Assembly (NCBI GenBank): GCA_016748015.1
Contig: JAAOMT010000591.1
Span: 385,532 to 449,531, forward strand
DNA: 64,000 nt
Reading direction: 5' to 3'
From: Geosiphon pyriformis uo1
Lineage: Eukaryota; Fungi; Glomeromycota
The position numbers and the translations under genes are program-made. Shown piece by piece: positions 2,783 through 48,436 of the stretch (position 1 is the first letter of the stretch; every line of letters starts with the position of its first letter). The notes beneath the pieces were generated by a model. It was not told where the DNA came from. It was given only the letters and a program-made list of their open reading frames with translations, and made no database searches.

Positions 2783-3487
2783 ACATACTTTTTATTAAAT
2801 TAAAAAATTTCAAAATATCTGTAAGATTCTTCATGTTTAGCAATAGAAATAAATTAGTCACTAATATGTAATAAAACAATTATAATTCTTTGGTTAATAA
2901 AAATTATAACTGTCTTTTTATTATTGATCCAAATATTATTAATTATAAAAAACTGATTGGCCAAATCCAAAATATACTGTGTTGAAGTTTAATCATTTTT
3001 TACTTAAATAATATTATCTACAAAAACATCTGTTACAAAAAAAGAAGTTTTTCTTTTACTAATCTCTATTTTGTCTATCTTAGCTATTAAATTAGTATTG
3101 ATTTAATATTTATATAAGTGTTTTTGTTTCTTAAACTTACACAATATAAAATCATAAAAAATTCTTCAAAGAAATGATAAAATGACTTTATTTTAATCTA
3201 ATCTATTATGTACTCTGTAATTATTTGAAAACCCAAAATTTATTATCATTTTATTGACTCTGTTTTTGTATATATTACTGAAAAAGTTAATAAATCTGTT
3301 ATATATTTTGAAACACTTTAAACTAGTTTCTAAATAGTGCTATCTAACTGAATTATAAGCTTTATGCATGTTTTATAGAACTAATCATAACTTTTGGCTC
3401 TTTTTTAATCTTTTTTTACAATAGAACCAACAACAAACATTAAAGATTGAGTTAAAATATTTTTTAATACTAAAAAATTGTTACCAT

Positions 3488-4460: not shown

Positions 4461-5125
4461 CTATAGAGAATATTAAACTTGTTATAAACAAATAAGATAT
4501 AATCTAACCAAATTTTGAACAAAATTTTCTTAGTCATCTTAATTAAAGCTATAGATTATGTGTTCATTAAAATGTTATCTTAATCATATAATTTGGAGAT
4601 CATTAAAACTTATGCTCTTTTTTAGAGAATTGGAACATCACTAATAGATTTAATAAACAAATTACTATCATATTATCATAATGTTTTCAAAGTTTATTAG
4701 TTATACCAGATAAACTAACAGCTTTGCTATTGAACAGATCACTGATTATTAAAATCAAATTTTTTAAGTTGATGGTTTTTATTATACCAGAAAAAATATT
4801 TTTACTTATATATGCCAAAAGCACATATTAACTAGTTTATAAATCAAGCAGATCTAAAAAATTTTACATTTTTTTGTTTAATCTTCTATAATTATATTAA
4901 TTCTAAGTTTTATCTTATTTGGCTTCAAAACCAATTCTTTTTTATTTATTAGATAGTTCAAAATCATTTCTGAAATAATCATTTTAAGACACTTTTAATT
5001 ATGCTACTTTTATTAGAATTAAAATTTTTTATGTGTTTTTTAATTGTATTTCTAATAGCTGTATTTTTAGCTGTTTTAAACTCATAGTACTTGAACTTAT
5101 AATAATTCTTTTTGATTTTTGACAG

Positions 5126-6031
5126 TATTATTTATAGAAAAAGTATGAAAAAAAAAACAGAAAAAACAAATAAAAAATAAACCAATAAGAGAATAGTACT
5201 TAACAAGTAAACACAATGTCAAAAAATTATAACATATTGCTTAACAATATGCATATTGTCAGTAAATTATAGCATACTGTTTAGCAATAAACATATTGTC
5301 AAAAAATTATAATACATTGCTTAGCAATAAGCACATTGTCAGAAAAAATAGGGCATATTGCTTCAGAAAATATGAGATTTCATATAATTAGAATTATGTG
5401 TATATAGTGAAAGTATTAAAAGCAAAAAAAACAAAATCAATACCAATAATTAGTTAAAACTTATTAATTAATTAATATTTCTTTCTTTAAAAGATAGTTT
5501 TTTATAACTTAAAATAAAATCAAATCACTTCTCAATAAAATATTAATTATTATTTGAATTTATGTTATCATTGCTTGATTAAGAAATATTAATTAATTTT
5601 ACTCTATCAACACTCCATATTAATAGAATCCAACACTTAAATATACTAAACCAATAGCTTTTGATCATGGCTATTAATAGAATACTAATTTTTTATTTTG
5701 TTTTATTTTGTTTTGTTTTGTTTTTTTGTTGTTTACTAATTAATTAAAAAAATTAAGTGCTAAGTAATTAATGTCAAAAATAGCCTGGTAAAAAACCCAG
5801 AAATAAAGATAAAAATTTAAGAATAGCTTATTAAAAAAGCATAACTGTCAAATTAAACCAGTTATTATGCTGAAGAAAAAAATTCACAAAAGAAATCATC
5901 AATTGAATTTCTGTTTATTATACAAAAAACTTAACAAAAAACCTTCAGATATTACCAATATTATCAAGCTATTAAGCACTTAGTTATAAGTTTGTTATTT
6001 GTATTAACACCCCAAATAATCATCTGTAATA
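5126..6031 (+). mobile_element. Solo LTR (906 bp), related to the LTR at 1752-2782, inserted in LINE ORF2
   Basis: Termini TATTA...TGTAATA (mutated TGTTA...TGTAACA). TSD ACAG/ATAA differs only by C->T and G->A. Removing it restores the LINE frame ...IKHL/SKIKK. It shares the CCAATnGCTTTTRATCATG..ATACTAATTTT + poly-T motif with ~2287 and ~35430. Confidence 0.8.
5195..5363. repeat. ~39-bp tandem repeat (about 4 units) inside the solo LTR
   Basis: Units of the form RCATATTGCTTAGCAATAAGCATATTGTCAGAAAATTATA that differ mostly by transitions. Confidence 0.8.
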
Positions 6032-9000: not shown

Positions 9001-10420
9001 CAACAAAAAAATAAAAATAAAAAAACTTTTTTTTTTGAAAATATGTTCTTTAAGAAATTTGAAACATAAGAAAAAAAAAACTTTTTTTTTTTTTTTTATA
9101 TTATTATAATAAATTTTTATTATTATTAAATTTTTAAGATTATTAAATTTTTAAGATTATTAATATTAAATATTTTATTAATACTACTGGTTTTATTATT
9201 TATTTTGTTGCTTTAAAATTTAAATACACCAAGAATATTAAATTTTAAAACATTTTTAAATAAAAATTAACAAATAAGTTTATTATATTAGTATTTATAA
9301 TTTGTTTTTTTATTAGTATAATCAAAGTTAATAATCAGAAAAAACTAATTTTTTTTTGTATTCAAGTAAGTTTTCATATTTATTTTGTTTGTATTTGCTA
9401 TTAACTAAAGAGTTTGCCAATTTTATAGTTATTAAAAAAAATTATTGACAAAAATAGTTAATAAAAAATAAGATATAAAAGAAAAAAAAGTAAAAATATC
9501 TTAACTAATTCTTTTGGCTTTTATTATAGTTAGAAAATCAATAAGAGAAAGAGTTTTTTAAAATTTTAAAATTTATTTGTATATTTTTTATGTTATTTTT
9601 TAAAATTATATTTAATTATTTATGTTTATAGTATTGTTTTTAATATCTAAATTTTGTTATAAAATTTTTAATCAATTTTATTATTTTTGTTTATTTATTA
9701 TTTTTAAACTTTTTTACAATTTTTTATTATTTTTTTAATAATTTTTTATTTTATTTAATACTTAATAACTAATTGGTCTATCTTTTTTTCTAATACATTT
9801 TTCAATATGTCTAGATACACTAGTAACCAAATTTATATAGATATTTCATGGAATTGCTTGCCATTTTTCTTGTAATACGAAGAATAATTTGTGATTATTT
9901 TCGGACACAGATTTCGTTTTTTGAGTTGTTTTTGTAAATAATCTCATAAATGCTCTATTGAATACAAATCGAGTGATTGTGTTAGCCATTTAGAAAGTAA
10001 ATTAAAATGTTTTTGAGCCATTTAAGTCTTAACATTAAACTTTAGATTTTTGAATATTCATGTTTATCAAAAAAAATCCCGAAAAATTTTATATTGATAA
10101 AAAAAACGCGAATTAAATATTGTTAATTATATCTTTGTTTTGATTAATTAATTGTTATTTTAATACATTCTTTATTATTTATAGATAGCTAATATAGTTA
10201 TAAATAAATTTTTATAAATATTTTTATTATTTATGGAACACAAAATAATATATTTACATATTAATATTTGTATATAAACTCTTTATTTTATAAATATTTC
10301 CATTTTTTTTATTGTTGTTTTTTAGTATTTATTAAATATATTAAAACCAAATTTATCTTAGTTTTGGTTATATTAGATTTATTTAAAATATTTACAAATT
10401 TTAACAATTTTCAGTTTTTA

Positions 10421-10470
<50 letters not shown>
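10421..10470. repeat. (ATT)n microsatellite
   Basis: About 16 perfect ATT units; explains the poly-Ile ORF in the track. Confidence 0.95.
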
Positions 10471-10471
<1 letters not shown>

Positions 10472-10979
10472 CTCAAACATATAAATTAAAATTTTAATAT
10501 TATTATAATTGAAATATTTTATATTTAAATAATACTTGTTATATATATTTTTTACTGTTGTTAAAAATACATTGTAAATTGTTTTTATTAAATAAAATTA
10601 CAAAAAAGTTGTGTATTTGTTAGTTAAATCAAACTTTAAATTGTTGTTTAGTTGCCAAATTTTAAAGTTTTTTTTCAGTTTATTTTATTAATATTAACAT
10701 TTCCAAAAATTTCTACTTTACACAAAATGTTTTCAAACATAAGTTTTTACAATTTTTTTAATATTATAAGATATTGTTATTGTTAAACACTTTTTTGCTT
10801 TGGTTAAATAACATTTCATATTGATAAACTAGGTCCACCAACTTATTTGCTTTTTCATTATTTGTTATTTTATCATAATTGTTAAAACTCCTGATTTAAC
10901 ACCATTTTGGAGAATTCTTGAAAATCTCAAATCCTAAAATTGCCATAAAATATTAAGATAATAAACTCATCTACTATAT

Positions 10980-11978
10980 TCAGAAATCAAGTTGATCGAC
11001 TAGCCATTTTTTGAAATAAAGACAAGATTTAGGTGATACGACCCCATCCTCTGAGCAATAATTAAATATTGGACATCTTCCACAAGGCATGTCAGTCCAC
11101 GCATTTCCTACATAATAATCATCCCCTTGAGGTTCACGCAATGCCTTGTAGACGACTTGAGAATCATCATCCTCTTCATCCTCCTCATCCTTTTCTTCCT
11201 CATTCTCAGTTTCATTTTCAGAATCGTTTCCTTGTTTGCCACCATGCGTAGCAATAACTTTTCTTTCTATTTTTCCATCAAAAATTAATAGATCAAGGAG
11301 AGAATCGATATCTGATGGTTCTAAACGAGTATCTGTGATTTTACTTTCAATGACGAAATTATGAATTTGTTTGGCGTTAGGATAATTAGGATGAGAAGCG
11401 GAATATATTGCAGTCGCACTGTTTTTCGGGTAACTTCTGGACAGAATGTATCTATAAGCAACTAAAGTCAATTGTTCTACGAAATCAGAATCTAGTGTTT
11501 GATCTGTAAACCATGGACCCCCAGTAATCTCTTGCGAAGGTTCTAATTCAAAGAGCATATAGGTTTTACGTGTAGGATTCTGAACTGGCTTGACAGCCTT
11601 TATTAAATTTTTGCTTTCCAAACTCTTATAAACACGGGTAAGAGCTGTTTGGTGTAAATTGGTCTTCATTTTGATGTATTTCGTCCAAATTCCTTGGGTA
11701 CCAGAGTGCCTAATAACCTTTAAGACCATCATTTCTTCTTCATTTAACTTGTTATGTTCTGGCAAAAGCTCCAGTGCATGATAGGTAAGCTCAGTATCCT
11801 CATCGATTCGCATTTCGACCAAACTGGTTCTAAGGAGTTTATTAATAATGGTTACTAGCTGCTGCACCGGTATAACGAGTTCCTCGGCAATTGTTTGCGC
11901 CGAGGCACCATCCTCCCCTTTCCTCCTAAGCAATTGGTAGACTTTGAGTTCCTGGGGTTGCATTGTCTTGGTCGACAT
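10980..11978 (-). CDS. RPC34: RNA polymerase III subunit C34/RPC6, intronless, 332 aa
   Basis: Winged-helix region GIWTK..KTNLHQ..KSLESKNLIKAVK..PTRKTYMLFELEPS.EITGGPWF, and a C-terminal Cys motif PCGRCP..CS...SPKSC (Fe-S ligands in human RPC6). First ATG at 11978. Confidence 0.96.
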   Translation of the reverse strand: MSTKTMQPQELKVYQLLRRKGEDGASAQTIAEELVIPVQQLVTIINKLLRTSLVEMRIDEDTELTYHALELLPEHNKLNEEEMMVLKVIRHSGTQGIWTKYIKMKTNLHQTALTRVYKSLESKNLIKAVKPVQNPTRKTYMLFELEPSQEITGGPWFTDQTLDSDFVEQLTLVAYRYILSRSYPKNSATAIYSASHPNYPNAKQIHNFVIESKITDTRLEPSDIDSLLDLLIFDGKIERKVIATHGGKQGNDSENETENEEEKDEEDEEDDDSQVVYKALREPQGDDYYVGNAWTDMPCGRCPIFNYCSEDGVVSPKSCLYFKKWLVDQLDF

Positions 11979-12226
11979 TTTGGGAAGAGTAAGTTGAATG
12001 GCAGGCAAATTAGCTTAAACTGCAGTTTAAAATATCGGATCAACACATGATTCAGTGAGTAATATTTATTATCATGATATCAAAAAGTTTTAATTAATGA
12101 TTTTTTTAATTCCGAATTTTTGGTTTATATTTTTATTTTCATTTACAAAATTAAATTAAAAATTAAAGAATCTTATTCTAATGAACATATTTTACAATCT
12201 ATGAAGTAAAATTTACTAAAAAACAA

Positions 12227-24927: not shown

Positions 24928-25670
24928 TTAGATTTGGTCGAGTTGTCTCAAAGTTTCCTCAAGTTCCGCTTTAGACTGCTGATATTGTTCCAGAAGCTTT
25001 TCATATTTTTCTTCCGATTGAGCACGTTCTCCATCAAGCTGGTGCACTTTTCTTTCAAAATGCTCTGCTTTGACATCGGTTTGGCGGAGTCTTGTATCAT
25101 TAAAATTGATTAATCGGTTATTAAAATTTTGATTATGTCAAAGTAATTCAAAAATTCAAAAATTAGATTTAGATACTTTTCAGTAGTTTCCCTCAAGTTT
25201 TTTTCGGTACTATCCAACTCACTCTCAAGCAAGGCAATCTTTCGCTGGAGACCCTCGATGTTACTCTTAGAGGATTCCTCCTCCTCTTGCAAATGTTTTG
25301 AATCGGCTAGTTTTTTTTCGGCACGGTCGACCTGTGCTTCCAAAAGAATTAACTTATTTTGGAGAGAGAGGATTTCTTGGTCTTTGCTGGCAGATTCTTG
25401 CTTCTCTTTCTTTAGTGCGGCTTCCGCATCTTCTGCACGCTGACTAGCGGCATCAGCTTCGGCACGTAAAGCGGTAAGTCTCTAGAAAAGTGAAAAATAA
25501 GGGCGCTCGTGCTAAATAACCTTATCTGCAATTACAGAAATGACCAAGCAGATTATAAAAGTTTGCCCCCTTCAAACATGGCCAAACTTGAGTTTTAATG
25601 CAACCACTCCGTCTCAAAAGAAATGCTAGCATTAATTCAAAAGAAGACACACCTCCTTGAACCTTTCCAT
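24928..25670 (-). CDS. TPM1: Fungal tropomyosin, 3 exons
   Basis: MERFKE/RLTALRAEAD, LQRKIALLESELD..EKNLRETTEKLRQTDVKAEHFERKV; continuous coiled coil of ~160 aa. Confidence 0.96.
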
Positions 25671-25890
25671 CGGAAGCTATAGGTTTCAAAACAAACGTTG
25701 ATTAAGAGGAGGTTAGGAAAGAAGTAAGCGTTTGCTGATGCTACAATAGACAACTCATATCTGTCTCAGCTATATCCCAAAGCGTAGTACAAAGTGGATA
25801 AACACGATTTGCAGATTTTCAATCTGCATTGATTAAATTTCCAGCGTCCAAGACATTTGTATAATTGAAAAAACGAATCCATCAAATTGG

Positions 25891-27153
25891 TCATTCTTTA
25901 TTCACCCAAATCCATGAAGTACCACATCCTGCACCAATTTTACCAACTCGAAAAGGTTCCTTTGTAACAGAATCGACTATATTTTTTGGGATCAAAACAT
26001 CGTATCCATCTTCTGTTGCACAATTACCATGTTCATTCCAACCCCAAGCCAGACATTGACCGAATGACGTTCTTATTAAAGAGTGTTCAGAGCCAGAAAC
26101 TACATTGATGACTTGAATATCAGGTTTGAATGGTATTATTTTGGGAAGATAACAAAGAAGAATTGGTTTTTCAATCCAATAATCATCATTTTTTTCCGGT
26201 AGAATTCCTAATTGCCCATGATCATTTCTGCCCCAAATAGCAATTTTTTTTGATTTAAGCAATATTATGGTGTGATGCCAACCGCAAGATATTTCCTCGG
26301 CATTTTCGCCCAACATTACAACCCTCTTTGGGATTGCCCTAGAAGGAATGTCTAAAGGAGAAGCATAACCAAGTTGCCCGTATTTATTCTGTCCAAATGT
26401 ATAAACTTGACCTTGTTTTGTAAGAACAGCAGTGTGATACTGACCACATCCCACATCAACGATTATTTCATGGCTATATGGGAGCTGAATCTGAACCGGA
26501 TAAAAATAATTGGTTTTATTGATATTTGTTTTTCCGATTGGATTCTGGGCTGGAATTCCTCTCATTTCATCGTCATATTCATTCAAGCTCAATTGACCAT
26601 ATCGATTATTACCCCACCCATAACACTTTCCATCAACAGTTAGTGCAATAGAATATCGCAATCCACAAGCGACTTTTTGCACATTAGAAATTCCTTCAAT
26701 CTTCATAATTTTCCCTTCAGTTGAAAGAAGAGAGTGTCCCAACCCCAATTCACCAAAAGACCCTTTGCCAAAAACATAAAGTTCTCCTCTTTGTGTGGTC
26801 ACAAGAGTGTGAGACCAACCACAAGCGACACTACGGAAACGCGTACAATTTGAATCTTTTGTGTTAGGTTCAGAAAGTTGAACTTTATGGAAAATATTAT
26901 AATGAGTTGAACTGCTTTTCAAACCGCATTGCCCGTACACGTTTTGTCCACTCATCCATAATTCTTCGTCACATGTAATAACTGCCGAATGATTGCCTCC
27001 ACCACTCATCACCAGCGGTGGCCTACTCAAATTGGGAGAAGTTTTTGAAGAAAATAAACAGATACGTGGGGTACGTGAATCTTCTTCACTTCCAATTCCT
27101 AGTTGCCCTTGCCCATTTGAGCCAAATGCATAAAGGCCCCCTTCAAGCGACAT
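25891..27153 (-). CDS. ATS1: RCC1-repeat protein, Ats1/Kti13 (SERGEF-like), intronless, 420 aa
   Basis: LYAFGSNGQGQLGIG, GGGNHS, repeated ACGxxH/GxNxYGQLG blades, AWGWNEHGNC and terminal GAGCGTSW match the Ats1/Kti13 pattern. First ATG at 27153. Confidence 0.8.
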   Translation of the reverse strand: MSLEGGLYAFGSNGQGQLGIGSEEDSRTPRICLFSSKTSPNLSRPPLVMSGGGNHSAVITCDEELWMSGQNVYGQCGLKSSSTHYNIFHKVQLSEPNTKDSNCTRFRSVACGWSHTLVTTQRGELYVFGKGSFGELGLGHSLLSTEGKIMKIEGISNVQKVACGLRYSIALTVDGKCYGWGNNRYGQLSLNEYDDEMRGIPAQNPIGKTNINKTNYFYPVQIQLPYSHEIIVDVGCGQYHTAVLTKQGQVYTFGQNKYGQLGYASPLDIPSRAIPKRVVMLGENAEEISCGWHHTIILLKSKKIAIWGRNDHGQLGILPEKNDDYWIEKPILLCYLPKIIPFKPDIQVINVVSGSEHSLIRTSFGQCLAWGWNEHGNCATEDGYDVLIPKNIVDSVTKEPFRVGKIGAGCGTSWIWVNKE

Positions 27154-30100
27154 AATATCTTTCACGAATCAGCTTAGAAGATATGATTATAAGTTATTAT
27201 AACATTTTACCAGCTTCACTTTCTAGGTTTACAAATTGCCATTGAAATAATCCAGGTTCATTTTGTGAATTGAATTTGGTCAAAAATAGATAATCTTAAA
27301 TTTCAGTGATTGAATATTCAATTATTTAATTGTATCATTAAAAATCTTAAAATTCGATTCCTTAAAAATGTTTTTTTTTATTTATTTATTATTAAGTATA
27401 AAAATTTCTTTTTGATAACAATTGCTAATAACTATAACAAAATTGGTTAAAATATCAGATTAAAGCAAAAAATTTAAAAATAAATTTATAAATATAATAA
27501 TAATTAAAACAAGTAATATTTGTTAAATATAATGTTTAATTAAAATTTATAAAATTAAAAAATTAACACATATAATATTATATATTTCAAATTTAATTGG
27601 CTTAAATGGCTAATTATGTATGACAAATACATAAACTGTATTTGTTATAAAATATATATATATTGTATATTGCGTTTAAAGCAGTAAAAAATTAAATAAT
27701 TTTTTTGAAATACTTAAAAAAAAAATTATTAATGTTTTTAAACCATATTAACTATCTTAAATTTTGATTTTTTAAAAATAAGACTTTGGTTTTTTTGATG
27801 TTTTACTAATTTTCCATTATTAATATTAATTATAATGCTTAATTTTATTTTAATTATAAACAATAATTTGTTTTAAATAATAATAATAATAACATATTTG
27901 CCAAATTTAATTTAATATTGTTAATATAATAAATTTGATTGGTTTTAAAATTTAAACAAGTTATATTTTAATATGCAATTTTATTTAATTATAAAAATTG
28001 GGTTAATAAAATAAAAACTAAAGCATTTTTTTTTGTTTTTTAAAAACACTATTGGTTTTAAAAGCAATTAAAAAATAATTATTAATTATTAAAATTTTTT
28101 AAATAAATGCTTTTTTTAATATTTAATATTATCATAAAAATTAAAATAATTTATATTAAGATTATAATTTAGTTTTTATATGATTTTATTAATATAAAAT
28201 TGGTTATTAAAAATTATTTTAAGTTTTTTTGTATTTTAAATTTTTTTAACTATTGTTATTAATATTAAACTTGTTAAATTTTTATTATTATTTTTACATT
28301 ATAAATTTGGTTTTGTTTTTTTTTTTAGTTTTTATAATGTTTTTTGGAATATTTTACTAATAATATTAAAATACTTTTGAAATTTTTAGTAAAATTATTG
28401 ATATTAAAGTTTATTAATTTGTAATAATATATTATTGTTTATTTTAAAATTATTCTTGTTTGTTAATTAATTTAAAAATAGTTAAAAGTAATACATATAA
28501 CAAATTAATAATTTAACAGTTATAAAAAGTAATTTAATATTATAATAGCTTAATAAAAAAAGAAAATATCTTTTAAAATTAATTTTATTAAAAATTATTA
28601 ACTTATTAGAAGAATAAAAAATAATATTAAACTTTATAAATTATAATTAAATAATATAAATTAAACCAAATACAGTTAAAAACAATTTATGCTATACAAA
28701 TAAAAAACCATAAATAAAAATATTAATATTAATATTAATATTTAATAAGCTTTAATATTTCTGTTTTTTATAAAAAAAGCTTTTTACAAGTAAACTGCTT
28801 AAAAAAAACTAGCAAAAAAATTTTAGATATTGTAAAAACTTTTAAAATTAATAAAAATTTTTAAAAACTAATATTTTATAATAAATACTAAAAGTTATAT
28901 TGTTTTAAATTATTTATTATAATATTTAAATTTATTGTTATATTTAATATAAAAAAATACTAATAATTAAATTAGTTTGATAATTATTGATTATATTATT
29001 ATTAAATAATTAATCTAAAAAAAGTATTAATGTTTTAATAAATAACTTTATAATATTGTATTTTTATAGTCATATTTATTTAAATAAAATATTTAATAAG
29101 TTATTTTTTTATGTTTCGGTTTTTTTATTGTATAATTAAATTAATACTTAATAATTTGTTATTAAGAATTTGATATATTAAAATAAAATTAATTATACTA
29201 TTTTTTTAATAATTATATAATAATTATATAATTTTTTTTGGTTAAATTAAGAATTGTATTATCAACTATTTTTATTTTTTTGGTATAAAATAAAATTAAG
29301 TATTATATTAATATATATTAATATAAAAGATAAATAATTTATTTAAATCAAATTATTTAAAAAGTAGTTTAATAATAAGTTTTTTAAGATTTTAAAAACT
29401 TTTTTGCTAATAAGTATATTAATAATAATTGATATTTTTTTAAAAAATAATAAAATAAAAAAACAATTTTGGAAAGATTTTGGAAAAATTTCTTATAATA
29501 AATAATTAAATTAAAAAAAATATAACTATATTTATTATTTGCTTAATTAATTAAATTTTTTTGATTTTGGCTAAATTAAAAATACTATTTTTTATAATAA
29601 AATATCTAAATAATTAAATAAAATTAATTTTGAGATTTATTTTGAAATTTGTATTTCTTAAAAGAATAAAAAAATTTTATAAATATTTATTAATTCAAAA
29701 AACATAACTGTAAATTTATATGTATTATATTAAATAATAAAAGTAGTTTATAACGATTTTTAAAATCTATTTATACTTATTAAAATTTAGTAATTAAAAG
29801 AAAAATATCATTTTTAAATTTGTTTAAACTATTTTCAATTATTAAAAAAAGATATAAACTTTTTTAATAATAGTAATTAATTCATAATAATTAATATAAA
29901 AATATAAAATTTATTTTTAAAAATTATTATTATTAAAAAAGTTAATTTATTCTTGGTTTTTTAAATAAACTCTAATTTTTTTTGATTTTTTTTTTGATTA
30001 ATTTATTATTATAATAATAAAACCAATATATTTTTAAATAAATAAAATCTTTTTTTTTATGGTTTTAATAAAATATTTAATTAGATTTTTTTATGTATTA

Positions 30101-32779
30101 ATAAAATATAATTCTATTATTAATTATAATATAAAATTTAAAATTTTCAAAATAATTGTAATTTATATATTTTTTATAGTATTTTAAAAACTAAATTAAA
30201 TTAAATTTATACAAAAAAACTTATTCAAAAAAAATATTTGTGTAAAGTTATAGTTAAAATATTATTAAAAAAATAAATTGGTTTATTTATAAAACAATAT
30301 TATTAATTTATTAATAATTTTATTATTTACAAAAAAATTTAATAATATATTAAATATATTATTTTTAAGCAAAAAATTTAATTCATATTTTATTTTAAGA
30401 TTTATTATTTTTTTATATAAATTACTAATTATATAATTAAATAGATTAATATTTTGGTTAATTACAAGAATTTTATTATTAAACTCGATTTTTAAAAAAG
30501 TAAAAACACCAATTAACTTAATAATTAAAGTAATTAAAACATTAATAGATTTAACAACAAACTTAATTAATAAAATTAATTCAAATTTTAAGAAAATTAA
30601 CTTAAAATTAATTAAAAAATTTATAATAGCAATAATAACAAAAACAGCCAAAAAAACAACAACAAAAAAAGCAATAAAACAAAAACTTAACATAGAATTT
30701 GGTATTAATAAAACAAAATTTAAAAACTTTAAAATTATTTGTAAACTTAAAAAAATTTTATAATTAATAGCCAAATAATTTAAACTCTAATACTTAAAAC
30801 ATTGCTAATAGTCAAAGTTTTTTTATTAAATACAATACTTTTTTAAAATACTAGTTTTTATAATTATAGCTTTCAAATTATTACAAATACCAAAATAATA
30901 ATAATATATTGTAGTTACTAAACAAAATTAAAAAATAAAAAATAAAACAAATATAATTACTAATTTAAAAAACCAAATTATTAATTTCAAAAGCAATACA
31001 GCCAAAAAAAAATTAATCAATTTGGTTTTAAACATATTATAAAAAAAATTTTTTTTTAATTTGTAAAAAGATAATTTTTATGTTGTTTTTATTATTAAAT
31101 TAATTAACAAACAAAAACGGCTATAATTACACCAAAAAATTTAAAATACATAATAACATATTATAAATACTAAAAAATTTTAAAACAATTTAAATAACTT
31201 TATTAAAAACATTAAAAACTATTTTAATATTAGCAACAAACATATTTTAAAACATATTATACAGAATAATAATAACAAAAAAAATGTAAATTCAGAAATC
31301 ATCATAAATTTAATAATTTTAAAAATAAAAAAAATAAAATCAACAAGTTTAATTTATAATTTTTTAAAAAGTAATAGCAATATATTTTTTTTATATATAA
31401 TAATTTTTGTTTAAATTTTAATATTTAATAAATATATAAATAAAGAATATATATACAAAAATTTAATATTTAGTATGTCTTTTTTTTATATTAATACAAT
31501 CTTAAATTTGATTTTATATATTAGTAATACAGTTAAAAATAGTCTTATTAAACAAATTATTCTGTTTTTTTTTCGATTATTGTAATAAAAATTATCTAAA
31601 AAATATTTTTTTTTGTGTATTATTATTATTTTAACGTTTTTTTAATATTTTGTTTAAGAATAATTCAAATATTCTTAATTAAATTAAGATTTAAACTATA
31701 TAATAACTAAGATAAAATGTAATTTGGCAATTGTATCTTAAAATCTGTGTAAATGGTTTTTAAAGTATGTTTTAAATTATTATCATATTTGAAAATTCAA
31801 TATTATTATCTATATATACTAATTGTATTATAATATAAATTTTTATTAAAAATTTTATAATAAAAATATTAGTTTATATTTTCTATAAAAATATATATTT
31901 CAATTTTTCTATATACACAAATGTTTTTTATATATAAAGTTAAATAAATGTTTTACTATTAATATAATAGATTTATTTAAATAAAATTAAGCCAATATTT
32001 CGAAATATTTATAAAATTATTTTATTTAAAAATACTATTTTTGCACTAATTATTATTAAAATATTTTTAAGTTCATATTAATTGGTTTTGTTTAACTTGT
32101 ATAGTATATAAAAATATATATTTTGATAAAACAACTATATAATTAAGCCTAAAAAGTTTATTATAAATAGTCTATTTACTTATTTTAATCTTAAGATATG
32201 TTTTTGTAAGTTATGTCTTAATTTTAATTGTTGTAGTAAAATGATTTTAATTTACAATTTTTTTAATTTGGTAACACATTTTTAGTAAAGTTTTTTGTGA
32301 ATGATTTGAATAATAAATTACTCGAATTTGACTATTTTAATAATATTGTCTTATATATTATTTACAAAAGCAAAGAAAAATATTAGTTTTTCGAAATATT
32401 TTAATTAAAGTTTAATAATTTTATTGTTAAAATCTCTTAATAACTTTATAATTAAATTTTACAGAAATATTTTTTATTATAAAAAATAAAATATGTTATT
32501 GATTAAAACAATTTTGTTTTAAAAAATAAAAACAATAGTATTAAATATATATACATATAAATTATAACTTAAAATATCTTAACAATAGCTAATTAAATAA
32601 TAATAAAAATTATATACTGCAAAAATTACTTTACTATTGTTTTTCAAAAGTACTGTAAAAAACAATATTTTTTTATCTTTTTTTAAACCATTAATTTTAT
32701 TACTAGAAAAATTTAATCTTGAAGTAACTGTACTATATTTTATTAGACAGAAAAATTTTTTAAAAAAAAAATAATATAA

Positions 32780-35025
32780 CATATATATATGGCTTAAAAA
32801 AGTAGAAAAAATTGTTCAAGTAAATAATTAAAACATACAAAAAACAATCTAAGCACTACTTTTTTTTTGAAAAAAATTATTAGTATTAGAGTTTAAAAAA
32901 AACCTATTGGTTTTATTTAATTTAAAAACTTAATTTTAAAATATTTTATTAATTCAAATACTATAATACAATTCTAAATAATATTATTAAGTAAAGCATA
33001 AATAAAATAGTTACCTAATATTTTAATTTAACCGAATTTATTATTAAATTAAAGTTATAAAAATAAAATATTATACTAATGTTTAGATTTTAAATCAATT
33101 TATTAGAAAATTAAAAAACAGTATTCTAAAAAAAATATGCTTTATTTATCTTAATTTGTTAATAAAAGCTATTATATTTTCTAGAACTTTTAAATCAACT
33201 AAAAAAAATTAATTATAGCCAAATAATTAACATAATAATAAAACAAAATAAAAATATTAGAAAAAAAATAGTTTAATTAAAAAAACAACTCTTTAAAAAA
33301 ATAAAAAGTTATTTTATCTTATATTTAAAAAGAAACAATATATACTAAACATCATAAAAATACAATTAAAGATTTAATGACAACCAATAAAATTAATTAA
33401 TATAACAAAAATATAAAATGAAAATATATGTTTGCTATTATTATAAATATGTAAAATATTTAATTAGCCAATTTTAAGCCAGATAATATTATTAATTATT
33501 ATTATAAAAGATAATAGTTTTACAACTATTTTTTCTTTTAAGTTAAAAAAATAAAACTATTTTTAATAGAGCAGTATTAGACAAAAAATATTTAATTACT
33601 GCTATATATATAGAAATAATAGTAAACAATATCTTAATTAAATTTATTTTAAATAATAAATATACTAAAAGCATTATAATATTTTAATTAATAAACCAAT
33701 TAAGTTTTATAGTTAATTATATCACAATATCTTAAATTATAATAGTTAATAAAAGTATTAAACTATTTTATAATAAAATTAATTTGTTTTTTTTTAAATT
33801 AAATAATATAATAATAATTACAAAAGTATTAATAATAAATATTATACAATATTAAATATTAATAAGCAATAATTAATTGATAAAAGCAAATATTATTTTA
33901 AATTAAACTATTCAAAAAAATTTTATTAATTATAATAATTATTATACAGCTATTTGTAACTGTTTTCAAAAATTTAACAATATTTAAAAATTTACTTTTA
34001 AATACAAAAAAACTCAGTATTGTTAGCAATTAAAACTTATTAATTCTTATAAATTAATAATAATAAAACAAAACTATTAATTATATTAACTTAAATAAGC
34101 AAAAAAAAATTGAATAGAGCTAAATAACCAATTAAAAAAATAATTAACAATCCAGACCAAAGCTAGAATACTCAATATACTATAAAAACGTTTATTTATA
34201 ATAATATATAATACATTAAATAAAAATTCCAGAAGTTTAATTTACTATTATTATAACTATTACATTAAAAAAAAATTATTTAAAAAAACATGATAAATAG
34301 AATTAACAAAAATAAAAACAATATTTTACTTAAATTAACATTTATCTTTACAAAAATTGGCTTATTTTATGCTAAAATCAATATTATAAAAAGTATTAAT
34401 ACAAAAAAAACCTTAAAATTTAAAATTTAACAATACTAAAATTAATTAATAAGTTAATAAAACTTATTTAATAAACTTAAGTTAAAAAATTTGTACCCTA
34501 TACTAACTTAGAACAAAAAATTAATATTTGATACTTTGATAATAAGCACTTAAAAATAAGATTTAAAAGAACTTATTTAACTAATATTAAATTTAATTTA
34601 TAATATCCAAAAAATTAATTCATAATATTATTATTTAGAAGTATTATTAAAATTAATTTAAAAATAATAATTGAAATTTTACCAAAAATAATAGTTTAAA
34701 TAATATTATAATCAAGCTTTGCAAAAAAAAGAAATAAATGTTTAAAGAAAAATAATTAACTTTAAATATACAAAAAATTTAATGGTTTTATTACAAAACA
34801 ATTTAGAAAAACTATATATTATTAAACCTAAAAAAAAAATTACACAAACAATTTTTTTACTATTAATAAAAATTACAAAATTCATATTAATAAAAAATCA
34901 AAAAAAATAATATAAATAATAATAAAAACTTTATAGTTTTGGATCAATAAAAAAAAAATTAAAACAAATTTAATTAAAACAACAAAAAAAATATTAATTA
35001 ATTAAAATTAAACAGCTTATTATGC
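32780..35025 (+). mobile_element. Heavily mutated Gypsy element: gag, aspartic protease, dUTPase; truncated by a later insertion
   Basis: gag: IWLKKVEKIVQVNN*N and *ILNQFIRKLK (WL...EKA..ANxW; QILDQFIRGL). Protease near 33595-33760: ITAIY...IKFILNNKYTKSII (LILDSGSAGSII). dUTPase motifs at ~34520-34960. Reconstructed by reversing C->T/G->A changes. Confidence 0.7.
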
Positions 35026-38000
35026 TATTACAGATAAGGTTAATGAGACATTGTAGTAATATTTAGTGTTCTAAATTTAGATAATAAAAGCTTAAAAGTC
35101 TCTATTTTAAATACTTAAAATAAGTTGTTTAATATTAGTCTTTGAAAGTTTTTTGCTAATTTTACTCATAAAGTTCTTTAGTTATAAGCACAAAAAAGTA
35201 TTCAGCTATTTATAGTTTAAGTGTGTAAGCTATTTTTTTCAAGCTAGTTGAGTATAGTCACTAAAATCTAATAATGTCTTTTTACTCTTTTGGTAAGTTA
35301 ACAAAATAATGTTAATATCTAATTCTAAAAAGAGCTTCCTTTTTTTACCAGACTATTACAAAGTCTATTTTTAGATAGTTAATTTTGCAATGTTGTCATT
35401 CCACAAAAAAAAAAAAAGAAATAAAAGAAATTAGTATTGTTAATTACTGTAATCAAGAGCAATTGGTTTAAGTTGTTATTTGTTCAAGACATTTTATGCT
35501 AAGAACATCTGGCCAAGAACAAAAGTAAAAGAATAAATAATTTGGTTTAAATATAAGATTCAGAAATTATAAATAAATGATTTTTGGTTTTAATAATTTC
35601 TTTATTTAAGATAATGTAAATATATAAATAAGATAGATCTAATAGATATAAGTAAAAAATATATTTTTTATCTGATTATTTTTTGTTGTTCTTTTTTTAC
35701 TGTTAAATTTACTTATTTTTATATATATTTTTAGTTTTACAAACTTGTTTTTTGATTGTTTGTTATTATTAGTTATTGTTTGTTATTTCTGTTGTTGCTT
35801 TGTTTTTTTATACTGTAACTAATTATTTTATATTATAGTTAATTATTTTGTGTTATTTTGTATTATTACATTTTTTTATGTTATTATGTTTTTTAATCAC
35901 GTTTTTTTAATATCTTTTGAATTTGTTTTTTCTACTTAGGTAATATTATCTTTTTTTTTAGAATTGAGCTTTTGCAAAATTATATATATTTGCAAAAATT
36001 GTTTTTTAGTATAGTGTTCAATTATTGTATTAAGTATTGCTTTTTGTAGATCTTTAAACTGTGTATTAGTTATTTGTTTTATACTGTTAACTATAATAGT
36101 TTTTAGTATATTATCTAACAGTATAGCTGAACAGTATTTAAAGACTGTATACAATTAGTAGTTGCTTTATAGTGTAATGTTAAGTTGTTTTTTTTTATGA
36201 ATTCTTTTACTTATTTGATAACTTCTTTGTTGAAGATTTGTCTGTTGAGATTTTTATATAGTGTCTTTAATTTTAGTTGTCCACCAATTTTAAAAAACCA
36301 GTAGACTAGTAAAAGTTTTTTTTTCTATTCTCTAATATTTTTTGGTGTCTATTCTTTTATGTTAAGTAGTTTAATTTTCTAAAAAAAACCTTGTTGGATT
36401 TTTTTTTATATTAGAGACCACATATCTTTTTTTTTAAATTATTTATAGGAATAAAAACACTTAATTTAGTTGAACTTTTGCCCATTGTTACCAGACAAAA
36501 TTAGAGATATTATTTAGCATGAAATTATCTTTATAATTCCTATCATTAATTAGCATATATTATTATTCAAATTATCACTTATTACATTAGCAAAATGTCC
36601 AAAATTATCATTTAATTAATAACCCAATTTGCACATAACATAAATGTAACCTAATTACAATGATCAATCATGCAATACCCCGAACTATGTAACATTCAAA
36701 AAGTTTGCTGAAATTTGTAGAAATTTGCCAAAATAATTAATAGTTTACTGAAATATCTAATAGTTTGCAGAAATAACTTGTAGTTTGCCAAAATATATCT
36801 TTAGTTCAGCGAAATTGTAGAAAAGAGCAAAGTTCAAGTTCATAAAATAGTGTTATGACAAGTTGTATAAAAAAAAAGCTTCTCTCTTCGAGAAAATGTA
36901 TCTTACTTTAGATTTATCACTTAGAACTATTCCTACACACACAAAAAGAAATAAATATCAAATAATTCAAAAAACCAAATTTTTTAAATATTACACTTGG
37001 AAAATCTCCAAAACCCAACTAACATTTCGAAATTAATTAGCTACCAATTTCAGTAAACTGTTAGTGACTTCAGGCCTGGATAGAAAACACTTCTCTTGAT
37101 AAAATTCTATTTCTTTTACATTTCTTTTATTTTTTTTTTCTTTTCTTATTACAATCATTAAGGTAGTCTACAGACAAGATTCCTGTAGAAGAGTTGACTT
37201 TCACAGTAAAGTAACTACACATTTTTAGTAAGCTTCCAGACGAGCAATTCCTGGGAAAGAGTTGACATTTACTACAACGTAACTACACAAGTAACTGGCA
37301 TGGAATTGGCTATTCCACTTATAAACCCAGCAGTTCAAATTATAGGAGATAATTTGAAGATAAATTCAGTTATCGGAGGTTCAAACACTTCCTATAGTTG
37401 TGAATTAACAGCATTACAATGAACATACAAGAGCTAAGAAGAGACCAAAAACCTCTGATAATACCATTCTTTTTTTGCATAAATTTCTGTATCATATTTT
37501 TTTATTATTAATTGTAATTTCTATTGGTATTGTGAATTGTTGAATGGTTTTAAATAATTGTTTTAAAAGTTTTAAAATTTGATTTAAAAAGTCTATGTTG
37601 AAAGTTCTATTGTCTTTTTTTTTGCTGTTTTGGTTTTTATATATACTTAAATTTGTGATTTAATTTATTATTAATAAACTATATTTTAATAACAATAATT
37701 GGTTTTAGATCTTGTGATATATTTTTTGGTCTGATTAATATAATTTGTATTTCTAGTTAAGATACAAATAATGATGACTCTTGATTGATATGATAAATTT
37801 TTAGTCGATTTTTATGCACTATTTTTTTTAAAATTTTGTTCTCTGATTATAATTTGTATACTTTATTGCCTAAAACTTTGTGTATATAAAATGATTCATC
37901 TCATTTTGGATCAAATTTTCAATTTTATTGTTTTTTAGCTTTAGTATGATGTAATAATACTCTGTTTTTAATCTTAAATTTAGCTAGTTGGTTGGATAAG

Positions 38001-38270
38001 CAATTATTATGTATCTTTTTTTGTTATTTCTGAGTATTATTAATATTGTTAGCTGTTATTCTATAATTGTTTTCTAATGTTTCTATTAGTTGGTATGTTT
38101 TTTGATATAAAGTAGCTTCAAAATTCTCTTTAGTAATTAATTTTGTTGAAAAAGAAGATATTTTTTATTCAATAAGTAGAATGGCTTATCTTTTATAAAC
38201 TAGTTCAAATAGTATAAACTGATTAGTATTTTGCTTTAGTATTTAATATACAAATAATACAGAAGGTATG
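35026..38270 (-). mobile_element. Second copy of the Gypsy 3' region seen at 418-2782 (integrase C-terminus, extra ORF, 3' LTR at 35026-35945)
   Basis: The reverse complement aligns colinearly with 418-2782. ORF 35936-36154 (VFKYCSAILLD..FKDLQKAILNT) matches ORF 1547-1732. Interrupted by the solo LTR at 36486-37463. Confidence 0.92.
36486..37463 (+). mobile_element. Solo LTR (family A, 978 bp)
   Basis: Termini TGTTACCAGA...TCTGATAATA; perfect TSD CCAT (36482-36485 / 37464-37467). The empty site is visible in the paralog near 1220. Confidence 0.93.
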
Positions 38271-39146
38271 AATAAAAAAACAATAAAATAAAAAATATAA
38301 TTATAAATAAAATAGACTATTTTATATATATAGACTTTTAAAAAATAAATATATAAGTTAAAACTAAATAATAAAGTTTTAAAAAAAGTTATACATAATA
38401 ATAAACCAATTTTAAATTTTTAATTTCACAAATTAGTATATAATTTTTTTTAATTAATTCAAAAAATAATTCTTAAAACTTAAAATTTTTATATTTTTTT
38501 AGAAAAATAAAAAAAATTATTAAAATTATTTCTTAACTTATTTATAATAATTATTAAAAATTAAATTAATTATATTTAAAAAAATTTATTATAACTTTAA
38601 TAATAAATTTACAAAATTATTACTTTTATAAAAGAAACACAAAAAATTATTTTGAAATTTACTTATTAAAAATTTTAAAACAAGCTTTAAAAAAAACTTA
38701 TTATTTATTTGTATTAATATTTCTCCAATATTACAATTTAATAAAAACTTTAATTGTATTTTAATAAACAAAACAATAAATATACACTAATTTATAAATA
38801 TTTTATATAAAAAAAGCATTTTATAAAAAAAACTGGAATTTAAAACAACAAATTTTATTTTAAAAGTTATTTAAAAGCAAATACATAACAAATTCAAAAT
38901 AATAATTAGATTAACATTTATTACAAAATTAAAGTTACTTAAAGACTTTATAATCTATTTTATATTTGTAAAAATATTTTATAAAATTTAGTTTTATAAT
39001 TTTTAAAGATTTAATATATTAAAAAGCTTATAAAATTAAAATTTTAACAATTTTTAAACCAAATTGTTTTAATAATCTTAGATAATTATTTAGAATTACA
39101 GATAATATTTGGATTTTAATAAAATTTAGTTTTAAAAAAAAGATTA

Positions 39147-39870
39147 TATTATTAATAAAAATTTTAAATTATTTATTATTACAAAATTATTCTTATAATT
39201 TTTAACATATATTATTATTTTAATTTATTATTTATTATTTTATTAAATTATTAAATATTATTATTTAATTAATAATTTAATTTGTACAATATACAAATAT
39301 AACTAATTGTAATAATAAAATTATGTAATACTTTAAACTATATAATATTCAAAAATTTGCCAAAATATTTAAAAATTTAATAAAAAATTTAATAGTTTAT
39401 TAAAATAATTAATGATTTATAAAAATAATTTGTAATTTGCCAAAATATATTTTTAATTTACCAAAATATTAACAAAAAAAAGTGCTAAATTATAAAATAA
39501 TATTACAATAAATTGTATAAAAAAAAGCTTTTTTTTTAAAAAAAAAAAATTTTTAAAATTTTAATTTAGAATAACCAATTAATTACTGCAAATTAATTCA
39601 AATAAATTTATGTTTTGAAAACCAATAAATTTTTTTATAATTATTATTGTTTAAAACTCAAAATTTTAATTAATATTTTAAAATTAATTAATTACCAATT
39701 TTAATAATTACTTAATTAATTTTAAATTTAAATTAAAAACATTTTTTTATTTTTTATATTTAAGTAGCTTATAATTAAGACATTTTGTAAAAATATTGAT
39801 TTTTATAGCAAAATAACTATATATTATTAAAAAGTTTACAAACAAGAATTTTTGTAAAAAAGTTGAATTA
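39147..39870 (+). mobile_element. Third, near-saturated copy of the family A LTR (3'-truncated)
   Basis: Colinear with 36486-37265 (TTTGCCAAAATATAT, GTATAAAAAAAAGCTT, TACCAATTT, AGTTGA), with nearly all other C/G converted to T/A. Confidence 0.8.
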
Positions 39871-42519
39871 GTTTTAATAATTATGTTAAAGAAAATAAAA
39901 TAAATTGTTTTTAAAATCTAATTTTAAATTAATAAAATCATATAAAAATTAAAACACAGTTTTAATGTAATATAATTTTTGTAATAATATTAAATACTAA
40001 AATAAAAAACTATTTATTCAAAAAAATTTAATAAATAATTTTTTTTTTAAATATTATTAAAACCAATAATGTTTTTTAAAAATAAAAAAAAGTATTCTAG
40101 TTTTTATCTTATTAATTTAATTATTATAATTAAATATTTTATTTTTAAAACTGGTAATAATTAATTAAAATTTATATTAAACAATATAATTAAATATTAA
40201 TTCAAGTTAAATTTAACCAATATATCATTGTTATTAATCTTTAAAACAAAAAAAAACTTAATATTTTAAAAACAAAAATAACAAAAAAAAAATTAATAGC
40301 AGTTTAATAACCAGTTTGTAATTAAAAACTCTGAAACTCTTTACATAATAATAATTATATTAAGACTATTTTTAACATGTTACTTTGAAAAAACTTTTAC
40401 TTAAAACTAAAAATAGTGTTTTTTTTAACAACTAAAAGCTGCTTAGTTTTATTATTGTTTTAATAGTGGTCAAAAAATTGTAAAAGAATTGTTTTTTTTT
40501 GCTTTTTTATAATTTTTATAAATTCAATAATCATATTCAAACTTGAAAAACTGTGCCCCAACCACAATATGCTTTAATAACTCGCTACACTGCTCTGACG
40601 ATTGTTTAATTTTAATAGATACACCCAAGGCTTTCAGAGCTTCCATGCACCTCTTGAACCCCAAAATAAACTTTGAAATCATAAAGACTACATTGGTCAA
40701 GATGTTAACTTATAATGCATGGAAATGCTATTGTTTTTAGAAGAATAGTGGAATACCGAATTCTCTAACTTTTTATTTCAGAAAGAGCAACAAAAAAAGC
40801 TTTAGCTTTTATACCAGCAAACAGCAAACATATGAAGACAGCTCCTTCATTTCACTAGAATCAATTCTCTTTTCAGCCCAGTTCTCAAAACGTTTCGCAC
40901 TTTTTTTCGGTGGATGTGACTCCAGCCAGCCAGCCAGCATGATCAATTATTTTAGACGACGAGAAATCCTTGGTTTGAGAGTTTGTGCTTTCTTCAAGTT
41001 GCCTGCATAGTTACTGAGATTTTCTGTCATCAGCCCAGCGGAATTCTCAGTTTTGCCAATGTGCTCGTAGTTGCTAATATACTACCGAGAAGGTTAGGAT
41101 TCTTTAATATGCGCATACATAATGCACGTATGTTATTACCCTTAAATTCCAGAATAGTTACAATGATTGGTGACTCCAAAAGTTTTTATCATGGCTATGT
41201 ACAAAGGATTGTACTTGACATATGATATTATAATCACCAGCGACGAAGCCGGCTCCATAGTGGTGGGGTTGATGATGTCTCATATACAAAAACCTACGGG
41301 CGTGATCCCTTATGTATTGTGTGAAATAGATCTCCCCACATTTCGACGACTCCTAACTTGGTGCCCCTAGCACAAACACCCCTTCCACTTTTTGTCCTAA
41401 CGAACGATCCGCCAGTTTCGGGCGTCGGGACAAAATCCGTTAAGCAGCGGGCACGAATGCACCTCCCACTGTTGAAGACGGTAATACTTCATTTGTTACA
41501 ACATACATTATGTAAACAGGTAGCTATAAACAGCACATACGGATAATACTCGGGATTCGCCAATTAGATTCATGATGAAATGGAGAAGCAATGACCCAAA
41601 GGTCGATTCCTGGACACTATGCAACAACGGATGAGTGACCTCCTTGCTCTTGGGAAATACCCATAGAGCTGCTGGTGGCTTTTATCACCACGAAAACAAG
41701 TCATCTGTTTTATCGACAGGTGAGTAGAGATCCCCGTATCACGTGGGAAGTTCCTTATTTTCTTCTCTAAACGATAAATATCTTCGCATGACCAAGTTTC
41801 CTGGCTTCATCTATCAGCGACGTTCAATTCGGCTCGGTCCTGGAAATTTCGGGCTTTTGGAACATCGTTCAATCCTGCTGTGAAATCGACTAGCACTTGA
41901 TGTTTGATAAATTCTTGTCGCAATTTTCCCGTGTAAGTTAAGAAACATAATGATTTCCACTCAAAGGTGTCACTTGAGCGAAATAATCCACCGCATCGAG
42001 TCTTGTGTCATGGATGTTGTTTCCTGCAAACATGAACAGATTGGACGCTTTATTCAAACCATAGCAAAAGTTGAGAGTGTGAAAAAATCAAAATACAGGA
42101 AATGGAGGAAACGGAGCATATTCTTACAAGCAAGAACGGAAACCAGGCAAATGAAGTGCGAAAAACGTCAAATAAAGGCAACAGGGACGAGCGAAGCAAA
42201 TGGGGTGGTCGACGAAAGGAGCAAAAAACAGAATTACGTGCGTGTGTTGACCACACCGCATGATCACTTTGTCTGGTTTTGTTGTATGTCCCATAAATAC
42301 AGGTTGTTCACTATTAGACTAATTTAAAACTTTGATTTCCTTGAATCCGTTAATGATTAAACTACATTGGAACTTTGACGTATACCGTAAATACCAAAAT
42401 ATTATAAAATACAATTTTCTTGATCTTTTTCGCAATGGAGTGCAAGTTGAACCGATTTGTAAAATTTCCCAAACAAAAATATTATGTCTTGGTGCTTTTG
42501 AACTGTATGAACATCGACG

Positions 42520-47085: not shown

Positions 47086-48436
47086 TTGTGAAATTATTGG
47101 AGCCAAAACTCTTAATGAAAGATTACAGATTGCACGTTTTTTGAACTGTCAGAGTAAAGAATTTCGAAGTTGTGAAGATGTTGTGTTTGTTGACATTTGG
47201 ATTTTAGGTGAACTATCAGTGCATTATCAGTGATCATGCGATAAATTGGTGTAAGATCCAATGATCAAAAATAGTTAGCCCAGCGTATCTTTAAAAATGA
47301 ATTAGCTGGATTAGCGTTAGAAACTTTACGGGTAATAGGAGCCTTGATAAGAGGATAAACCTGCCAGATAAGAAGACGGGGAAATTGAGACTTTCCTCGC
47401 AGGATATTTTTTCACTCGTCTTAGCAGATCCACGTTTTCCCACGTGCAGAAATTAGAGACAAACATATAATGGGAATTAATTTTCGTTTTTAATCAATAA
47501 ACTTCTTTTCACTTGAAACAGAAACAATTTTTCATGAATTTTTTTAAAAGAAACCTGGATACATAATTTTATTGAATTCTAAAAAAAACAAAAACCAAAA
47601 GGATAAATTAAATTCATTTAATTTGGAATTTTATATGCAATATTATTTGTCAAACTTAATTTAAAAGCTGACTTTAATAATAATAATAAAAGAATGACTT
47701 TTATTATTTGTATTATTTTTTACACTGGTTTTTAATTAATTATTTTTTAATTGCTTAAGTGAGCGTAGTTCTTTTACTATCTACTTTTATAGTACATGTA
47801 ACTAGCCACCTTATTTTATATATTTTATTTTAATAATAAAAATGAATTTTAATTATTAATAATATAAATTTTTAATTTTAACATCACAAAAGTATTATTA
47901 TTATTATTATTATTATTAGTATGATTTGGTCCTAAAAAGTTGATACAACATATTAACAAAATAAAACTTTTTTTTATAATTAAATTTATTTATTATAACT
48001 TGTTTTTTACATAATAATTATACTTAAAACTGCTTAAAATATTCATTGTTTTTAAAATAATAAAAAGTAAAAAAAGCCATATCATTTTGTTTCAAATTAT
48101 TTTAAAATGAAAAAATCATATTTAAACATATTAATAAACATTATAAAAATAAATTTTATAATCAATTAATACTTTGTTATAATGAATTATATTGGTTCAT
48201 CTCATCATTCATGTGACACAGTGTACTATAGCCTAAAATGATTGGTTACAGGCAAAACGCGTCTCGAATTTTCGGCCTCACAATTTGACTCCATCATAAT
48301 CTATCAACCAATAAGCGACGGATTGTGGAAGGAGTCACCAGTCAGGTGACACAAAAATCCCATAAGCAGACATATCCGGGGCTTTTTGACTCCTTCACTC
48401 TCTTTATTTTCCTTCTTACTAAAAGCACAGATAACT

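Follow-up and report, generated by a model that had tools for sequence, protein, structure and literature searches.

Transposon-confined C-to-T hypermutation and AT-rich blocks between intact genes of Geosiphon pyriformis

An AT-rich block, its neighboring genes and its retroelement relics

The DNA analyzed in this study is a 64-kb stretch of contig JAAOMT010000591.1 of the fungus Geosiphon pyriformis (hereafter the window; positions given without a contig or element name refer to it). It alternates between genic DNA of 33-43% GC and blocks of 9-25% GC, with 28% GC overall. The block considered here, at approximately 27.25-40.55 kb, contains copies of a Gypsy-type long terminal repeat (LTR) retrotransposon in which cytosines of both strands have been replaced by thymines, to very different extents in different copies. 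Most of the block has 8-13% GC, but at its core (35-38.4 kb) the GC content is intermediate, at 19-25%; the stretches of 9-13% GC are at ~27.3-35 kb and 38-40.5 kb, and the genic DNA around the block has ~36% GC. The left border is sharp, GC content falling from 38-44% to 13% over ~200 bp at 27.1-27.3 kb, and at the right border it rises from 19% to 35% across 40.4-40.6 kb.

The block is adjoined by an intact RCC1-like gene (24931-27153, minus strand), whose start codon lies ~100-150 bp from the AT border. Since an exon of this gene is 100% identical to the G. pyriformis protein G9A89_011636, the next-best matches being from other Glomeromycotina, the host is a fungus outside Dikarya. The Rpc34 gene of RNA polymerase III (10980-12008, minus strand; Pfam score 272 bits) is also intact. 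The observed/expected ratio of CpG is 0.43 in the block and 0.88-0.95 in genic DNA. Genic DNA, introns and spacers included, stays at 26-47% GC; in 36 kb of it only 1.7% of the 100-bp windows fall below 20% GC, most of them in a single 600-bp island at 47.5-48.1 kb. The initial annotation, made from the letters of the window alone, had described a process that builds AT-rich blocks beside intact genes keeping their CpG, and both parts of this description agree with our data: retroelement relics of 9-13% GC lie between intact genes of ~36% GC. The island itself (47500-48200, 11-21% GC, within genic DNA of 33-42% GC) probably represents a small piece of an eroded transposon or a solo LTR.

The reference for the retrotransposon family is a natural copy, L062, encoding gag, an aspartyl protease, a dUTPase and an integrase with a Tf2-type SH3 domain; by this domain content the family is classed as Ty3/Gypsy-like. 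A genome search with the LTR gave 3654 first-look candidates, the best 40 of which, when scored, had 91-93% identity to the LTR of the window. Several of these 40 are paired ~8.9 kb apart and represent full-length elements. Even the intact-looking copies of the family are dead: their open reading frames (ORFs) are interrupted, and no remaining piece exceeds 471 aa. The dUTPase (PF00692, 46.6 bits; L062:3771-4754) is situated between the protease and the integrase. The presence of an enzyme of uracil metabolism on an element destroyed by cytosine deamination is possibly of interest.

The left part of the block (27250-35000) is heavily eroded, with 8-13% GC. No transposon family was recognizable at 27.4-33.5 kb, so the LINE (long interspersed nuclear element) assigned by the initial annotation did not find confirmation, and all protein-level relics found in the block are Gypsy-type. 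A 163-aa ORF at 30283-30774 has no match in Pfam. Nucleotide BLAST of the 9% GC stretches produced long matches of ~58% identity on both strands, which were discarded as noise of AT-rich DNA aligned to AT-rich DNA. The protein relics begin with a heavily mutated aspartyl protease (33559-33972, plus strand; tblastn E 2e-16, 34% identity), found with a natural ORF piece of lightly mutated copies that carries the Pfam domain Asp_protease_2. It is followed by a dUTPase relic (34481-34907, plus strand; tblastn E 3e-15), found with the Pfam dUTPase region of L062 given above.

The core of the block starts with repeat DNA of an unassigned family (35000-36483, 19-23% GC), beside LTR A (36484-37461, plus strand, 28% GC), a light copy in which 16% of C and 20% of G are converted and which shares ~92% identity with the 40 best-scoring genome copies. 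Next come an inverted and partly mutated Gypsy integrase fragment (37685-38275, minus strand; tblastn E 2e-40 and a nucleotide match) and the 3' internal end of a heavy copy of the same family as LTR A (38443-39146, plus strand), with 71% of C/G converted; in purine/pyrimidine space it is 89.7% identical to positions 8209-8920 of L062. LTR B (39147-40150, plus strand, 9% GC) is a heavy copy, with conversion of 72% of its C and 76% of its G. The six LTR strings by which the initial annotation had illustrated the mutation context (36878, 39527, 37039, 39690, 37066 and 39718) were all found in place.

The opposite ends of the block carry an inverted repeat: its left arm of ~265 bp (27867-28130, plus strand) has ~78% identity to the reverse complement of the right arm (40000-40250, minus strand). 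The two arms could be the terminal inverted repeats of a large DNA transposon into which other elements were later nested, or two inverted copies of one element.

A second repeat block, at 1-10900, has 14-25% GC and intermediate erosion, and ends beside the intact Rpc34 gene. It holds an integrase relic (9-1033) and a third LTR of the same family (3486-4460, plus strand), which is outside the range of the block reported above and is intermediate in load, with 33% of C and 27% of G converted.

Spectrum, timing and sequence context of the mutations

The mutations were characterized in 42 light and 35 heavy natural instances of this one family, from 59 loci. Every copy was aligned to L062 after purine/pyrimidine recoding, which makes transitions invisible to the aligner, and alignment columns were retained at local identity of at least 85%. 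Changes were polarized by column agreement among the light natural copies, without any consensus, ancestral or repaired element sequence. Strict polarization required 80% agreement; the inclusive variant accepted sites with C in at least two copies and at least 20% of copies, and T in the remainder. The data for heavy copies cover the LTRs and up to 1.5 kb of internal sequence. Ratios of rate constants are given with site-bootstrap 95% intervals in parentheses.

C>T and G>A are nearly the sole changes. In light copies they affect 6.0% and 7.1% of sites, respectively, compared to 0.7% for A>G, 1.5% for T>C and at most 0.5% for transversions; in heavy copies they reach 60% and 61%. Overall, C:G transitions exceed all other changes 10-30-fold. 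Within the window, the well-aligned part of LTR A and LTR B differs by C->T at 54 of 81 and by G->A at 35 of 53 positions, and the losses of C and G in LTR B, measured at sites common to light copies, occurred on one and the same copy. The claim of a transposon-confined hypermutation that consists of transitions only and affects both strands was borne out. In the heavy copies L032-L060, A<>T transversions amount to 4-5%, compared to 0.3% in light copies, a 10-15-fold difference, and C>A/G>T to ~5%; these changes may be real secondary mutation in AT-rich DNA or residual misalignment.

The timing of the process was analyzed using the LTR pairs of five full-length elements. These pairs contain 247 unique transitions at 1390 C:G sites (17.8%) and 17 at 2906 A:T sites (0.6%); the unique transversions are 1 and 6, respectively. 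As the two LTRs of an element are identical at integration and here differ mainly at C:G sites, the target of the hypermutation is DNA that has already integrated, and the excess per site is ~30-fold. Editing of cDNA during retrotransposition is ruled out by this divergence together with the equal effect on the two strands.

Within an element, C>T (13.5-19.7%) and G>A (14.6-21.4%) are equally frequent. Clustering by strand, which the initial annotation had raised as a property to be looked at, is absent: neighboring mutations are on the same strand with frequency 0.50-0.52, the expectation being 0.52. Over-dispersion is likewise absent from the counts per 200 bp, the variance/mean ratio being equal to its permutation value. 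Further, the rate is flat over the element, LTR and coding regions alike (15-18% per kb), and across bins of local GC content, so that DNA breathing is ruled out as a driver. The mutations are many independent single-site events spread over the whole insertion, and do not form processive single-strand tracts.

The initial annotation had proposed a sharp, non-classical specificity, with TpC and CpG being hit and RpC and RCCA/TGGY being spared. The direction of this bias is correct, TpC and CpG being faster and RpC and CCA slower, whereas the sparing is overstated: the bias is 1.3-3.3-fold and not a strict rule. The strongest effect is that of CpG relative to CpH, with a rate ratio of 3.25 (2.90-3.65) in light copies and 1.29 in heavy copies, where it is saturated. 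Outside CpG, TpC exceeds RpC by 1.60 (1.41-1.84) in light and 2.01 (1.77-2.30) in heavy copies, and CpC exceeds RpC by 1.37 and 1.54, respectively. The surrounding positions contribute as well, namely T at -2 (1.31 in light and 1.37 in heavy copies) and a pyrimidine at +2 (1.49 and 1.46). CpA is the slowest 3' context, its ratio to CpY being 0.82 (0.71-0.92) in light and 1.02 in heavy copies. The fastest trinucleotide is TCG, converted at ~0.40 of sites in light and 0.86 in heavy copies, but its advantage over VCG is only 1.27 in light and 2.05 in heavy copies; in light copies the fractions are 0.402 for TCG, 0.365 for ACG, 0.337 for CCG, 0.264 for GCG and 0.10-0.18 for non-CpG sites. CpH cytosines are converted in 13% of cases in light and 63% in heavy copies, and ~71% of all light-copy mutations are at CpH. 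Hence the exclusion of CpA-type repeat-induced point mutation (RIP), of a strict TpCpG rule and of decay at CpG only, made by the initial annotation, holds.

The surviving cytosines, on which the proposed specificity was partly based, were recounted. The ratio of surviving RpC to TpC is 2.7 in the block and 1.3 in genic DNA; at 28.0-29.2 kb it is 4.3, close to the earlier manual tally of about 4. Of the 84 surviving CC dinucleotides of the block, 72 precede A, as had been noticed, and the most enriched 6-mers are AGCCAA and AACCAA. This pattern arises because small rate differences are amplified by near-saturation. For instance, the summed rate constants of CCA and CCT differ by ~0.6, which leads, at the saturation corresponding to 9% GC, to a 4-6-fold excess of survivors, close to the 10:1 that is observed. 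RCCA cytosines mutate at 0.76 (0.61-0.91) of the rate of other RpC/CpC cytosines in light copies and at 0.88 (0.71-1.09) in heavy ones. Conversion in heavy copies has nevertheless reached 53% of the RpC cytosines outside CpG and 47-58% of those in RCCA, which rules out RCCA/TGGY as a protected motif.

The preference for pyrimidine flanks raises the possibility that genomic transposons are edited by a cytidine deaminase unrelated to methyltransferases, either AID/APOBEC-like or another member of the superfamily, with the TpC bias as its signature. The 1.6-2.0-fold preference for 5'-T, the flank effects at -2 and +2 and the activity in all contexts agree with such an enzyme. However, strand-coordinated clusters are absent, editing at the cDNA stage is excluded by the LTR pairs and the equality of strands, the domain search of the genome yielded no APOBEC_N match, and the 3-fold CpG excess indicates involvement of 5-methylcytosine (5mC). 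Compared to AID/APOBEC editing, the TpC bias is also weak. We consider this explanation improbable.

Mutational load and its possible drivers

The three LTRs of the window carry three different loads, 16-20%, 27-33% and 72-76%. Among light copies, the load correlates with divergence at A:T sites (rho 0.56), and heavy copies exceed light ones 2.6 times in A:T transitions and ~6 times in the C>T rate constant. Thus age accounts for part of the load, but perhaps not for all of it. The surroundings have no such effect: light copies flanked by DNA of 10-20% GC carry the same low load as those surrounded by 30-40% GC (rho -0.15), and DNA of 34-43% GC borders immediately on several heavy copies, even though 73% of the flanks of heavy copies are AT-rich. 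The load is therefore a property of the individual insertion and its history. LTR A, a light copy surrounded by eroded DNA, most plausibly inserted later. Further, the burst of thousands of candidate copies at ~92% identity implies that the process is slow relative to transposition.

The excess of erosion in older copies would also be expected without any targeting, if a genome-wide, strongly AT-biased neutral pressure eroded all unconstrained DNA and selection kept the genes GC-richer; the AT-richness of the genome as a whole and the overall composition of the window conform to this. However, with C:G transitions outnumbering A:T transitions 30:1 per site, GC content would be expected to settle at ~3%, and introns and spacers of genic DNA are rarely below 20%. 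Genic DNA also retains its CpG, and the block borders are sharp within ~200 bp. Judged by composition, introns and spacers keep both GC and CpG, and for this reason we give a genome-wide bias little credence.

At about even confidence, we favor slow post-integration deamination of individual transposon insertions, with a probable link to methylation, over classical RIP. Deamination of cytosine to uracil or thymine would begin after insertion and proceed slowly and cumulatively, covering the whole element at independent sites, on both strands and in every sequence context. A moderate intrinsic bias would be superimposed, ~3-fold for CpG and 1.3-2-fold for each of the pyrimidines at -1, -2 and +2. 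Copies would pass with time from ~33% through ~20% to ~9% GC, and adjoining genes are unaffected. The spectrum, the timing after integration, the symmetry of the strands, the absence of clusters, the evenness along the element, the restriction to the element and the gradation of loads are all seen in the data. The driver proposed for them is most likely cytosine methylation of CpG and non-CpG sites linked to silencing, or else deamination by a DNA methyltransferase, taking place as nuclei divide in the ordinary way.

Several points weigh against this explanation. The link to 5mC is one that we infer, and CpG-maintenance methylation of the kind found in Rhizophagus leaves the ~71% share of non-CpG mutations in light copies unexplained. 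A single uniform clock fits imperfectly: C>T changes per unit of A:T-site divergence are ~2.3 times more numerous in heavy than in light copies, and some copies, including the intermediate LTR of the window, combine high A:T divergence with a load of 25-33%. Subfamily structure or alignment error could be the cause. Further, the spectrum of single-copy DNA was judged by composition and not by polarized substitutions, and all quantitative data on context come from one family.

The imperfect proportionality between load and A:T-site divergence would be more natural for a true RIP-like machine that recognizes duplicates by homology and acts in bursts of deamination at a cryptic sexual or parasexual stage, using an enzyme with weak preference for TpC and CpG. 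Such a machine would also produce transitions only, on both strands, over whole elements including LTRs, with a sharp stop at element borders. The classical RIP indices of the block are in the range associated with RIP: TpA/ApT is 1.09 in the block and 0.76 in genic DNA (threshold >0.89), and (CpA+TpG)/(ApC+GpT) is 0.87 and 1.3, respectively (threshold <1.03), but these composite indices are non-specific where DNA is ~90% A+T. On the other hand, a copy shows no grouping of its mutations by strand or by position, CpA is not preferred, and thousands of ~92% identical candidate copies could accumulate. RID is listed for Ascomycota alone in a 2026 review (PMC13297926), and according to Dallaire et al. 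(2021) neither Gigaspora margarita nor Mucoromycotina yielded detectable RIP signatures. We regard a RIP-like machine as unlikely, and a homology-triggered premeiotic one seems less likely than a methylation-linked driver. The repeat-targeting assumed by the initial annotation is not supported in the sense of a homology trigger, and a slow cumulative process acting on single insertions fits the data at least equally well.

Candidate enzymes were sought among the DNA methylase loci of the genome, which were typed by their co-located domains. Contig C371 contains a DNMT1-type gene (420027-423692), with an RFD domain at 420027, two BAH domains at 420765-421790 and the methylase domain at 423510. 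A locus in C702 (1326200-1327926) combines weak BAH and methylase matches with in-frame stops and does not establish a DIM-2 orthologue. Four matches to PF00145 lack RFD, BAH and SNF2 domains in their vicinity (C657:788280-789372, C657:820713-821336, C646:684535-685894 and C692:422414-422635), and the same is true for a methylase-domain locus in C666 (681025-681548). No pairing of SNF2 and methylase domains, as in DNMT5-type proteins, was seen among the domain matches of the genome. The DNMT1-type gene and the other C5-methylase loci agree with the favored explanation. The several stand-alone loci are also in line with a RIP-like machine, whose enzyme could be encoded by a stand-alone gene resembling C5-methylases.

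Relation to known hypermutation systems

The process in Geosiphon resembles RIP of Neurospora and other Pezizomycotina in that C:G>T:A changes alone accumulate on both strands of one copy, in repeats and transposons, where they inactivate the DNA by stop codons and give rise to AT-rich blocks next to intact genes. Unlike RIP, it has no preference for CpA (CpA/CpY 0.82) and no clustering by strand or position. It is slow, as thousands of 92% identical candidate copies attest, and its host is outside Dikarya. The hypermutation of Pucciniomycotina is reported to be strictly TpCpG-specific, partial matches to this motif not being elevated (Hood et al. 2005; Horns et al. 2012, PMC3318451). Geosiphon shares with it TCG as the fastest context and massive Gypsy expansions despite the process, but here VCG is nearly as fast and most mutations are outside CpG.

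The closest analogue of the favored mechanism is found in Zymoseptoria tritici, where mitotic C>T mutation of methylated transposons depends on Dim2, is CpA-specific and does not show high rates at CpG (Moller et al. 2021, PMC8016269). Both cases involve transposon-confined C>T changes without a sexual cycle and, in the mechanism favored for Geosiphon, non-CpG methylation. As CpG is the fastest and CpA the slowest context in Geosiphon, the resemblance is in the mode of action and not in membership of the same system. Passive decay of methylated CpG is another point of reference, transposons of Rhizophagus irregularis being methylated at CG (Dallaire et al. 2021). It would explain the 3.25-fold CpG excess, the depletion of CpG in transposons and its retention in genes. 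However, because non-CpG cytosines are lost too (the CpH conversions given above), CpG decay alone cannot lead from 33% to 9% GC.

Samples of 21 kb around the RCC1 orthologue in Rhizophagus, Diversispora and Gigaspora contained no blocks below 15% GC, these samples being too small to conclude from. In Ambispora gerdemannii, which belongs to the same order, one contig (L067, CAJVPL010001803.1) has 10-16% GC at 1-2400 and 9400-11675, with adjoining genes at 34-38% GC. These AT-rich ends, an equally limited sample from around the same gene, do not have the survivor signature of Geosiphon: RpC/TpC is 1.21, and CCA equals CCT.

Our literature search yielded no published account of RIP-like mutation in Glomeromycotina. 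Geosiphon is covered by a 2025 transposon survey (PMC11952901), which describes a striking LTR expansion and mentions neither RIP nor AT-rich erosion. The transposon hypermutation itself is real and robust, and apparently unpublished for the Geosiphon lineage; it is best described as a variant of RIP-like or methylation-linked transposon hypermutation. A bolder proposal, which we put forward tentatively and with some doubt, is that the Geosiphon lineage possesses a dedicated, enzyme-driven and RID-independent deaminating defence. It would act in vegetative nuclei of a fungus that is not known to have a sexual cycle, with its own specificity for pyrimidine flanks and CpG, and would represent an evolutionarily independent equivalent of RIP in a non-Dikarya lineage.

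Hypermutation by RIP or RIP-like processes is usually seen as a trait of Dikarya, whereas here transposon-confined erosion in all contexts, down to ~9% GC, is observed in a lineage that is ancient and putatively asexual. Annotation by homology misses the heavily eroded copies, and both the transposon ages derived from Kimura landscapes and the repeat content of the Geosiphon genome need to be reread. The methylase loci indicate candidate enzymes that can be tested, and Geosiphon offers a natural system for asking whether methylation-linked mutation alone can replace RIP.

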